Below are positions 21,752 through 24,503 of a stretch of DNA of 64,000 nt, in pieces. How positions within the stretch are numbered: the first letter of the stretch is position 1; every line of letters starts with the position of its first letter. Below the pieces are notes generated by a model, which worked only from the letters and a program-made list of their open reading frames with translations, was not told where the DNA came from and made no database searches. Source of the stretch: Anthoceros angustus (taxonomy: Eukaryota > Plantae > Anthocerotophyta); assembly GCA_010909165.1 (NCBI GenBank), contig MU008175.1:735370-799369 (forward strand), read 5' to 3'. The translations under genes were made by a program, and so were the position numbers.

Positions 21752-24503
21752 ATGGCGGCCGCTGCCACGTCCTGGCATCTCTCCGCAGTGCTTGCTGCTG
21801 CCGACAGAAATTCTCCCAAACCTGCTGCACTCCGGTGCCCTTGGCCCGATTCCTGGGTTGATTCATGTGCATGCCACTTCACCTGCGAGGGGAGGCAGTC
21901 GCAGAGAGGACCGCTGCAGTGCAATGCATTTTGGTCCGGTGTCGGTGCGCTATTCCGCAGAAGTGCACGGGACACGGACAAGAAAGTTCCGCGGCCAGAG
22001 CAGCAGCAGCCACCCAGCTTGCCAGAGGCAAGAAAGAAGAAGGGCATGGGGGAGGAGGGGGATGAGGAGGAGGAGGAGGACGAACCTTATGTGCCTGAGG
22101 TGAACAAGATGGCTGCGCTCAGCGAGAGAGTGGTGAAGGAGATATCATCCCGGGGTTCAACTCAAGTGACGGTGAACAACATCGTGAAAACAGTAGGATT
22201 TCCGTCCCCTGGCAATCACCAGAGTGAATTTTTGCCGGGCACCTTCTTTCCACTGCGTATGAAAGTCTGGACATAACTCTTTGATGCGGTCGCGAACATG
22301 AACCATGAACAAGGTTGTGAGCTCTTGAACTGCTTGATGTTATGTGAGGCTACATTTCCTGTGGGGGGGAAGTATTTGCACCAGGTCGCTTTTTTGCAAC
22401 CCGCTGCACTGCTGGGTCCTCATTCTGATGGTTTACATTCCGCTCCTTCGTTCTGGCAGTTTTTGACAAAGGGCGGGCCGAAACAGGTTATCAAGAATGT
22501 GACTACCAAGATTGAAAGAGGCCAGCTGGTTGCCTTAGTGGGTAATCCATTTCGAGCTTTCTGTTCCTGTTGAGATGATGGACGTCGCTGTTTGTTTCCA
22601 CCAACCCTGTTGCAGTGCCCGCTTTTCACATGTGGATCGCTGTCTACCCGGCCGTGTGTGCAGGTCCTTCGGGCTCTGGCAAAACAACATTGCTGCGAAT
22701 CATCGCAGGTCTAGAACCAGCAACATCTGGAAGCATCTTATTTGATGGGGAAGATTTTACAAACGTTCCCGTTCAGGAGCGGGATGTGGGGTTCATGTTT
22801 CAGAGCTATGCCTTGTTTAAGCGGATGACCGTGGCAGATAACATTGCTTATGGTCTCAGAATTGCAAAGCGGAGGGACAAAACTTCGCCGGTAGGCTGTC
22901 TCTCGTGAAGCATCGTTCTGTTGCCAGCGTTGTGTCGTTTTCATTCGAGGAAAATGCAACAAGTATGGTGCGGTCCTGCAGGAGGATGTGGCCAAGAGGG
23001 TGAGGGACCTCTTGGATCTAGTACAACTATCTGATCAAGGGGACAAGTATCCGCCACAGGTTGGCTTCTTCGGTTATAGCCTTGGGGTTATGGATTGCAC
23101 ACGAGACAACAGTCTGACTGTGTTGGGTGCTTTCTTCCTGCAGCTATCTGGAGGGCAAAAACAAAGAGTTGCACTGGCTCGTGCTCTTGCCACTGAGCCT
23201 CGTTTGCTCCTCTTAGATGAACCATTTGGAGCACTTGACATTATTGTGAAGCAGGTAGTCTGTTGGATTATGGTCTGGCATTTTGCATTGCCATGACGAC
23301 AAAGGTTCACACTACTCAGGTTCTGAAGTGCAGGAGCTACGGAGCTGGGTACGAAAACTTCAACAGGCTCTCCAGATCACGACCATCTTTGTGACGCATG
23401 ATCAGGTTTCAGTAAAGGCTTAGAAGCACTGGTCAAACTGTTTTGCTTTCAAGCCTTCACAAAGTGGTGTTTCGTTTTAGCCAAGGGGTGCTAAGATCTA
23501 GATCACTGCTGCATTCTTTCTGGCAGGATGAAGCCATGGAAATGGCAGATCACATGATCGTGTTCCACAGAGGGCATGTTGTGCAGGTTTGTGTCTTGAG
23601 TAGGGTGGATTTCAAAAGAAAGTGGATGTGCTTCATTCCAGAGTGGTCTGATGGGTACTATTGGCCTGCCTGCAGGAGGGCAAACCATTTGAAATTTATG
23701 AGAGGCCGAGCACTCCCTTTGTCATGAACTTCATCTCTGACGTAAGTCCAGTTCACAGCCCTTTGTGAACGCTCAGATGTGCTTGACAACTCTCTTGCTG
23801 TCTGTATGTGGCCCGGATGACACCAGTGGAAGCCTTTTCAATCAACAGGCATTCAAAACGTTGTCATTGCATCCCTGATGACTGTGTACTGGTTTCTGCC
23901 AGGCATCCCATCACATGTCTGCAAGGGTAACATGTAGTCACTTGGTGTGAATTGTATTGCACAGCCAAACGTGGTTCCTTCCACCTGCCTCGCAGTTCGG
24001 CGATCTGGCCTCAGGACGCAGAAGCCTTATGTATGATATCATGACACCTCCCCCGCGTTGTATATTTCAAGTTTGTTGGTCATCCTGAGTATAAACAGTG
24101 ATGGTTTTCGGACACTTCGCATCAGGTGCTTGTGAGAACGGATGATGTAGAAATCTTATTGGAAGAGAGACTGGACTTGCCAACCACTCCGGCGACAGTG
24201 AAGGATGTGAACAACATGGGTCCAGAGGTACTTTCGCTGTTCATAAGATGCTAGCAGAGTTCAGCCATGTGATTTGAAAATTGCGGAAAAACTCAGCCAT
24301 GATCTGCAAAAGTTGAGAAGTACTAAGAGTAAGGTCTCTTGCAGGTCCTTGTTGAAATAGAGTACGATGACGGTGTCATTCTGGAGTATCTCATACAACG
24401 GTATGATTGGGAAGACCAACCTCTAGAAGTGGGGCAGCGTGTCCACCTCCATATGAAACCTCTTCTGCTTAAAGCATTCCAGCCTTCCGAACTAGAAGCA
24501 TGA
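21752..24503 (+). CDS. cysA: Nuclear-encoded, intron-containing CysA/SABC-like sulfate ABC transporter ATP-binding subunit with a putative plastid transit peptide
   Basis: Spliced exons give Walker [19 protein letters not shown], the Q-loop [25 protein letters not shown], the signature [56 protein letters not shown]|[21 protein letters not shown] and a TOBE-like C-terminus ending TGA at 24501-24503. The N-terminus is Ala/Ser/Arg-rich and is followed by an acidic linker. There are about 10 GT-AG introns. Confidence 0.8.

Follow-up and report, generated by a model that had tools for sequence, protein, structure and literature searches.

A nuclear, intron-rich CysA-type ATPase gene in land-plant DNA, a probable orthologue of green-algal SABC/SUA1

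The 64-kb stretch of DNA analysed here (the window) is land-plant nuclear DNA with a GC content of about 50%. On its forward strand, at 21752-24503, it carries a complete spliced gene for an ABC ATPase of the CysA family. We consider it probable that this gene is the land-plant orthologue of green-algal SABC/SUA1 and that its product is the motor subunit of a sulfate importer in the plastid envelope. There is direct support for the structure of the gene, its motifs and family, the distribution of its orthologues and the purifying selection on it; the targeting, the sulfate substrate and the partners are what we infer. The family is already known and its Marchantia orthologue is already annotated; the window gene is a further member.

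Gene structure and catalytic motifs

The coding sequence runs from ATG to TGA over 11 exons and 10 introns, and its 1464 nt encode 487 aa with zero internal stops (Table 1). All of the introns (10/10) are of the GT...AG type, with sizes of 79-267 nt, and the ATG at 21752 is the earliest start codon downstream of an in-frame stop. The exon model was built by hand from the three-frame translation and splice-site anchors, and it is independently validated by the Marchantia and Calypogeia orthologues, in which exon sizes and intron phases are identical. A preliminary description of this DNA had proposed a nuclear, intron-rich gene with about 10 spliceosomal introns at this position. Its span is exactly the ATG-to-stop extent of the spliced coding sequence, the introns number exactly 10, and the nuclear location is borne out by these introns together with plant nuclear genes on both flanks (PPR-DYW, LRR receptor-like kinase and MSI4-like).

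The translated model contains every ABC ATPase motif: Walker A (GPSGSGKT), the Q-loop Q, the LSGGQ signature, Walker B (LLLLDE), the D-loop and the H-loop (THDQ). Walker B includes the catalytic Glu, in line with membership in ABC_tran (PF00005). The Gly codon of Walker A (G175) is interrupted by a phase-1 intron, which is kept in liverworts. The window protein was profile-scanned exon by exon and was used at full length only in local BLAST, alignments and trees; a Marchantia protein (P0013, see below) took its place where a full-length family scan, a PDB search or a structure model was needed. CysA was the best NCBIfam match of both exon 3 (101 bits) and exon 5, which also matched Pfam ABC_tran with E=6e-14 and E=1e-10, respectively.

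Family placement and phylogeny

Summed over exons, the NCBIfam scores were about 231 bits for CysA (TIGR00968; six exons, the highest of any family), about 228 for PhnT2 and about 194 for PotA. These sums left the family open, and a representative homologue search was therefore run with exon 3. It retrieved P0013, a Marchantia polymorpha nuclear protein of 488 aa already annotated as 'sulfate/thiosulfate transport system ATP-binding protein', which shares 70.6% identity with the window model over 405 aa, up to the C-terminus. The best 120 matches to P0013 began with Riccia, Calypogeia, Netrium digitus (Zygnematophyceae) and one EukProt transcriptome. Next came Chlorokybus, Mesostigma and many chlorophyte proteins named SABC1, cysA or 'chloroplast ATP-binding protein', including CHLRE_06g273750, and last the 338-aa cyanobacterial CysA proteins. 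Cre06.g273750 is SUA1, a 'chloroplast sulfate transporter' (PMC4067076). No moss or vascular plant was present among these 120 matches, though moss and vascular-plant proteomes are present in the same collection, where they dominate the search with the MSI4-like protein. Plastid-encoded CysA was likewise absent from the best 120 matches to P0013, which did hold cyanobacterial CysA, and from the best 150 of the other homologue search, both made in collections without a plastome set; a compositional screen for AT-rich-type proteins returned bacterial proteins only. The nearest bacterial relatives are named CysA, with the NCBI label 'sulfate/molybdate ABC transporter ATP-binding protein'. One bacterial relative sits in an sbp-cysT-cysW-cysA operon; in two cyanobacterial relatives, cysA stands alone with no operon partners.

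A careful IQ-TREE maximum-likelihood tree was built from 43 rows and 347 columns, with E. coli CysA, PotA, PotG, MalK, UgpC, ModC and AfuC taken from the annotated K-12 genome. The window protein falls in a CysA clade (support 100/99) with E. coli CysA and cyanobacterial and other bacterial CysA proteins, from which PotA, PotG, AfuC, MalK and UgpC are excluded. There it is sister to three liverworts (95/79) within a land-plant clade supported at 100/96, and land plants, Netrium and P0018 form a clade at 100/100. Beyond the land plants, the outward order is Zygnematophyceae, then Mesostigma/Chlorokybus and chlorophyte SABC/SUA1, with all green nuclear proteins, including Chlamydomonas Cre06.g273750, grouping together at 87/86. 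E. coli ModC also lies within the CysA clade, on a very long branch. Forcing the green nuclear clade to the cyanobacteria cost 2.3 log-likelihood units. The preliminary description had assigned the protein to CysA rather than to PotA, FbpC or MalK and had proposed a phylogeny of this kind. The assignment stands on the clade itself, on the CysA structure 1Z47 as the best match by both sequence and fold, and on nearest bacterial relatives named CysA. The proposed tree was realised with Chlamydomonas, cyanobacterial CysA, PotA and ModC, and the protein groups in its CysA clade; plastid-encoded CysA, part of the same proposal, was not among the rows.

Scanned at full length, the orthologues P0013, P0152, P0153, P0018 and P0155 reached 316-331 bits on TIGR00968, and only Mesostigma P0112, with 357 bits, passed the cut-off of that model. 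The same orthologues lie far below the cut-off of NF008105, the equivalog CysA model (502 bits), and far below that of PhnT2 (457.7), and ModC models gave 179-188 bits only. Score per model position was highest for TIGR00968, which favours CysA over PhnT2 because the latter is a full-length model with a tied total.

Orthologues, intron conservation and selection

The Marchantia, Calypogeia and Chlamydomonas loci were compared with the window gene after each protein had been mapped exactly onto its own DNA. Marchantia and Calypogeia have 11 exons, and 10/10 intron positions and phases match those of the window gene; the sizes of exons 2-11 (82/227/78/111/72/60/66/66/102/159) are the same in all three. 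The Chlamydomonas locus has 0 intron positions in common with it. A complete orthologue from a second species was found at 761-3469 of L012 (Logan SRR33208241), with the same exon sizes, similar intron lengths and canonical splice sites. Its amino acid identity to the window protein is 81%, and the identity by codon position, 0.84/0.94/0.49, indicates strong purifying selection. Given the introns common to liverworts and the purifying selection seen in the comparison with L012, the gene appears to be an old one that still functions and has come down by vertical descent; a recent transfer from the plastid, a pseudogene and a contaminant are rejected. Its age had also been suggested in the preliminary description, and the orthologues in liverworts, Netrium, Mesostigma, Chlorokybus and chlorophytes, including SUA1, as well as the liverwort-shared introns, agree with it.

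N-terminal extension

Ahead of the ATPase domain, the protein has an added N-terminal extension of 138 aa, the count ending some 37 residues short of Walker A. It contains the acidic run already noticed in the preliminary description, and a Pfam scan of exon 1 gave no match in it. The first 50 aa hold 22% A, 16% S+T and 8% D+E. An x-x-C|N context, conserved across the orthologue alignment, closes the presequence near aa 57, and we take it to resemble stromal processing sites. Judging from the sequence, aa 1-57 are a candidate transit peptide that would direct plastid import.

The motif PY[VI]PEV[ND] lies 64-66 aa ahead of Walker A in the window protein, the three liverworts, Netrium and P0018; in the L012 version, YVPEVN is kept and T replaces P. 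Other islands common to the window protein, L012, liverworts, Netrium and P0018 are PPxWP, the acidic run and an amphipathic stretch. In the alignment of orthologues, these islands, PYVPEVN included, are absent in Chlorokybus, Mesostigma and Chlamydomonas. Alignment of exon 1 with the orthologues begins at about aa 40-85. The AlphaFold2 model of the Marchantia orthologue (mean predicted local distance difference test score, pLDDT, 79) shows disorder over residues 1-112 and a short helix at 126-133.

C-terminal domain and structure

The TOBE-like tail named in the preliminary description is real, weak by sequence and, in the orthologue model, a confident beta-rich domain that aligns with 1Z47. 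Exon 11 alone gave a weak Pfam match to TOBE_2 (E=0.17), and a precomputed PF08402 annotation is present on an orthologue. Orthologues and cyanobacterial CysA can be aligned with the domain from end to end, and the BLASTP alignment with cyanobacterial CysA reaches within ~7 residues of both C-termini. The ATPase domain of the model is confident, and the C-terminal beta domain has a pLDDT >90. With this model, Foldseek placed CysA 1Z47 first, over 357-362 columns including the C-terminal domain (template modelling score, TM, 0.77-0.82 by target), with PotA, FbpC, GlcV and MalK close behind. The predicted fold thus supports the architecture and not the subfamily, as CysA, PotA, FbpC, GlcV and MalK are indistinguishable by the fold search. 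By sequence, the PDB search with P0013 also gave 1Z47 as the top match (E=1.3e-71; runner-up 3e-65).

Comparison with known systems

Marchantia P0013, together with the Riccia and Calypogeia proteins, resembles the window protein in length (488 vs 487 aa), exon sizes, introns, PYVPEVN spacing and C-terminal domain, but the window protein branches outside the three and its first ~85 aa are not alignable with them. Chlamydomonas SABC/SUA1 (~45% identity) is also nuclear; it starts with a presequence, shares the ATPase motifs and ends in a homologous C-terminal domain. It differs in having no common intron position and in lacking the acidic-PYVPEVN extension. Cyanobacterial CysA (338 aa) is ~49% identical to the window protein over ~340 aa, including the C-terminal domain; it shares the CysA clade with the E. 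coli protein, and Alicyclobacillus CysA (1Z47) is the best structure match. Introns and the long N-terminal extension set the window gene apart from bacterial and cyanobacterial CysA, and whereas cyanobacterial CysA gives clear TOBE/TOBE_3 Pfam matches, the green nuclear proteins give weak TOBE_2 matches or none. Plastid-encoded CysA (mbpX) of Marchantia, Anthoceros and several green algae, compared here by description and not by sequence, has the same presumed role (PMC3104136, PMC3773388) and, unlike the window gene, is a plastome gene without introns or presequence.

Proposed function

The intact window gene would be an expressed-type nuclear gene for the nucleotide-binding subunit of a bacterial-type sulfate ABC importer. 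After synthesis in the cytosol, its product would enter the plastid by means of the N-terminal presequence. On the model of Chlamydomonas and bacterial systems, a dimer at the stromal face would dock on the CysT/SulP-CysW/SulP2 membrane pair and hydrolyse ATP at two composite sites, driving sulfate into the plastid. The catalytic residues are intact, and a homodimer with two active sites is therefore possible. The C-terminal beta domain would act as a regulatory domain, as in CysA, MalK and ModC-type importers. The gene was probably inherited vertically from a green-algal ancestor and kept in liverworts and in the window lineage, probably a hornwort one; judging by the best 120 matches, annotated mosses and vascular plants are without it.

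The envelope sulfate importer of Chlamydomonas consists of SulP/SulP2/Sbp/Sabc (PMC5948301). In Marchantia, SulP2 and SBP are nuclear (PMC8780407) and cysT is plastid-encoded (PMC3773388), and nuclear SulP2/SBP together with plastid cysT/cysA have been reported for Marchantia and hornworts (PMC8780407, PMC3773388, PMC6082510). None of the permease and sulfate-binding partners is encoded within the window.

Alternative explanations

Several points weigh against the assignment to a plastid sulfate importer. The ATPase subunit of an ABC importer does not itself set the substrate. The orthologues named above stay just under the curated TIGR00968 cut-off of 342.75, and the full-length PhnT2 model ties with CysA on their total score. 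The green nuclear clade as a whole is supported at only 87/86, and its cyanobacterial link is neither rejected by the approximately unbiased (AU) test (p-AU 0.364) nor supported by the tree, from which plastid CysA is absent. The composition of the presequence is only moderately transit-peptide-like. Given some of these points, the protein might be a CysA-family ATPase that powers another importer (molybdate/tungstate, phosphonate or other anion) or works in another compartment. The PhnT2 tie, the scores under the CysA cut-off, the position of ModC within the CysA clade and the sulfate/molybdate label of the nearest bacterial proteins would fit this, and the plastomes of these lineages already encode CysA, so that a second ATPase could serve elsewhere (PMC3773388, PMC6082510). 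We regard it as improbable, since the ModC models score far lower on the orthologues than CysA does and the PhnT2 scores fall far short of their own cut-off. Moreover, we know of no further bacterial-type anion importer in the plastids of these plants. The clade also includes Chlamydomonas SUA1, which is part of the sulfate holocomplex (PMC5948301).

The remaining explanations are much less credible. A move of the plastid cysA to the nucleus in the recent past of this lineage would agree with the presence of cysA in hornwort and liverwort plastomes (PMC6082510, PMC3104136), and a nuclear replacement would fit the hornwort copy having been called apparently non-functional (PMC3104136). Yet ten intron positions are common to two liverworts, Zygnematophyceae, Mesostigma, Chlorokybus and chlorophytes also have nuclear orthologues, and the best 120 matches to the Marchantia nuclear protein hold cyanobacterial but no plastid-encoded CysA, which makes such a transfer very unlikely. 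Equally hard to sustain is a mislabelled ATPase of the PotA/FbpC/MalK type or a broadly conserved land-plant ABCI protein, the latter an option that the preliminary description had considered. Single-exon scores for CysA, PotA and PhnT2 are close and the fold search fails to separate CysA from PotA, FbpC, GlcV and MalK, but the tree excludes PotA, PotG, AfuC, MalK and UgpC from the CysA clade, and the lack of moss and vascular-plant proteins among the best 120 matches speaks against broad conservation. The least credible of all is a pseudogene, bacterial contaminant or assembly artefact. The protein collection holds no full-length spliced protein of the window species, but the 11 exons, all with canonical splice sites, form an unbroken reading frame, conservation relative to the second species is 94% at second and 49% at third codon positions, and spliceosomal introns and plant nuclear neighbours exclude bacterial DNA.

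Nuclear and plastid copies side by side

In Marchantia and Anthoceros, Sabc has been described as plastid-encoded, with nuclear Sabc reported in chlorophytes only (PMC8780407), and the ATPase of the bryophyte permease is described as plastid-encoded as well (PMC8780407, PMC3104136). The plastomes of hornworts and liverworts carry cysA (PMC6082510, PMC3104136), although the hornwort copy is apparently non-functional according to one review (PMC3104136); the Chlamydomonas plastome, unlike those of hornworts and liverworts, is without it (PMC3104136, PMC6082510). Nuclear copies were found here in taxa or genera with plastid cysA (PMC3773388): Marchantia, Mesostigma, Chlorokybus, Coccomyxa, Bryopsis and relatives of Chlorella. 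The nuclear SABC is thus kept alongside plastid cysA in early land-plant lineages, as represented by the window gene, the liverworts and the L012 species. The nuclear copy would date from before the chlorophyte/streptophyte split, with loss then in mosses and vascular plants, and such a long coexistence of nuclear and plastid copies suggests non-redundant roles.

A tentative idea, which we think rather unlikely, is that the importer of two-copy lineages, including hornworts and liverworts, uses a mixed dimer of plastid CysA and nuclear SABC. The streptophyte-specific N-terminal segment (acidic run, PYVPEVN and short helix) would then be a docking or regulatory element for nuclear control. Such a mixed ATPase dimer may parallel the membrane pair of plastid CysT and nuclear SulP2. 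The case of Chlamydomonas, in which a single nuclear gene suffices and the plastid carries no cysA, speaks against an obligate heterodimer.

To our knowledge, the bacterial-type permease is the sole plastid sulfate entry system defined experimentally, in work on Chlamydomonas. The window gene raises the question of why two ATPase genes persist in two genomes over hundreds of millions of years. The coexistence of the copies and the conserved streptophyte motif PYVPEVN are points worth testing, and the target is tractable in that Marchantia and Anthoceros are both transformable.

Genomic surroundings

Downstream of the CysA-type gene, three tandem intronless open reading frames (ORFs) for pentatricopeptide repeat (PPR) proteins span 25389-31883 on the reverse strand and form a local array of RNA-editing-factor genes (Table 1). 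The two shorter ones may be pieces of one gene. Next to them, a 928-aa ORF for a leucine-rich repeat (LRR) receptor-like kinase (32401-35184, reverse strand) lies inside a block of 63-64% GC.

Table 1. Positions in the window of the exons and N-terminal features of the CysA-type gene and of the neighbouring PPR ORFs
Feature	Position	Strand	Content
Exon 1	21752-22192	+	aa 1-147; N-terminal extension and first ATPase-domain strand; without Pfam match
Exon 2	22460-22541	+	aa 148-174 and first base of the G175 codon
Exon 3	22664-22890	+	Walker A PSGSGKT (22666-22686) to Q-loop Q221 (22801-22803)
Exon 4	22982-23059	+	aa 251-276
Exon 5	23144-23254	+	LSGGQ signature (23144-23158), Walker B LLLLDE (23204-23221), D-loop
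Exon 6	23334-23405	+	H-loop THDQ at its end, H335 (23397-23399); best match TIGR00968 CysA
Exon 7	23527-23586	+	aa 338-357
Exon 8	23676-23741	+	aa 358-379; ATPase domain ends
Exons 9-11	23965-24030, 24126-24227, 24345-24503	+	aa 380-487; C-terminal beta-rich regulatory, TOBE-like domain
Candidate transit peptide	21752-21922	+	aa 1-57, Ala/Ser-rich, poorly conserved
Basic patch, acidic run, PYVPEVN	22037-22105	+	aa 96-118; PYVPEVN aa 112-118 (22085-22105)
PPR ORF 1	25389-28283	-	965 aa, PLS-type, E motif and DYW deaminase
PPR ORF 2	28688-30424	-	579 aa, PPR with E motif
PPR ORF 3	30573-31883	-	437 aa, PPR only

At the start of the window, an intronless ORF of 63% GC (22-1398, forward strand) encodes an MSI4/FVE-like WD40 histone-binding protein and may be a retrogene. 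Its product is 64-68% identical to moss, conifer and angiosperm proteins alike and 74% identical to a Logan contig. As these matches are evenly distant, the window appears to come from a deep lineage without an annotated close relative in the collection. Taken with the PPR-DYW array, the GC content of about 50%, the short introns and the place of the CysA-type protein as sister to liverworts, this makes a hornwort the likeliest source. Retrotransposon fragments of the Ty1/copia type (Pol beta-barrel, retroviral SH3-like domain and RVT_2 reverse transcriptase) extend over several ORFs at 11489-16943 on the forward strand. An Rfam scan of the window gave no match.

Degenerate (CTT/CCT)n tandem repeats occupy about 950 bp at 51071-52025 and account for a strong skew in both GC and AT at 50-52 kb. 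Read on the reverse strand, they fall within a 437-aa ORF whose product would be Glu/Lys/Gly-rich. A 973-aa low-complexity ORF at 58662-61580 (reverse strand) has no Pfam match and holds about four copies of a ~30-aa unit, '...NSRSH...EKR.R..(N/S)KLDV.LDG'. Ordinary plant genes are represented by a Kelch-repeat beta-propeller ORF (1481-2494) and a Senescence-domain ORF (47551-48453), both on the reverse strand.

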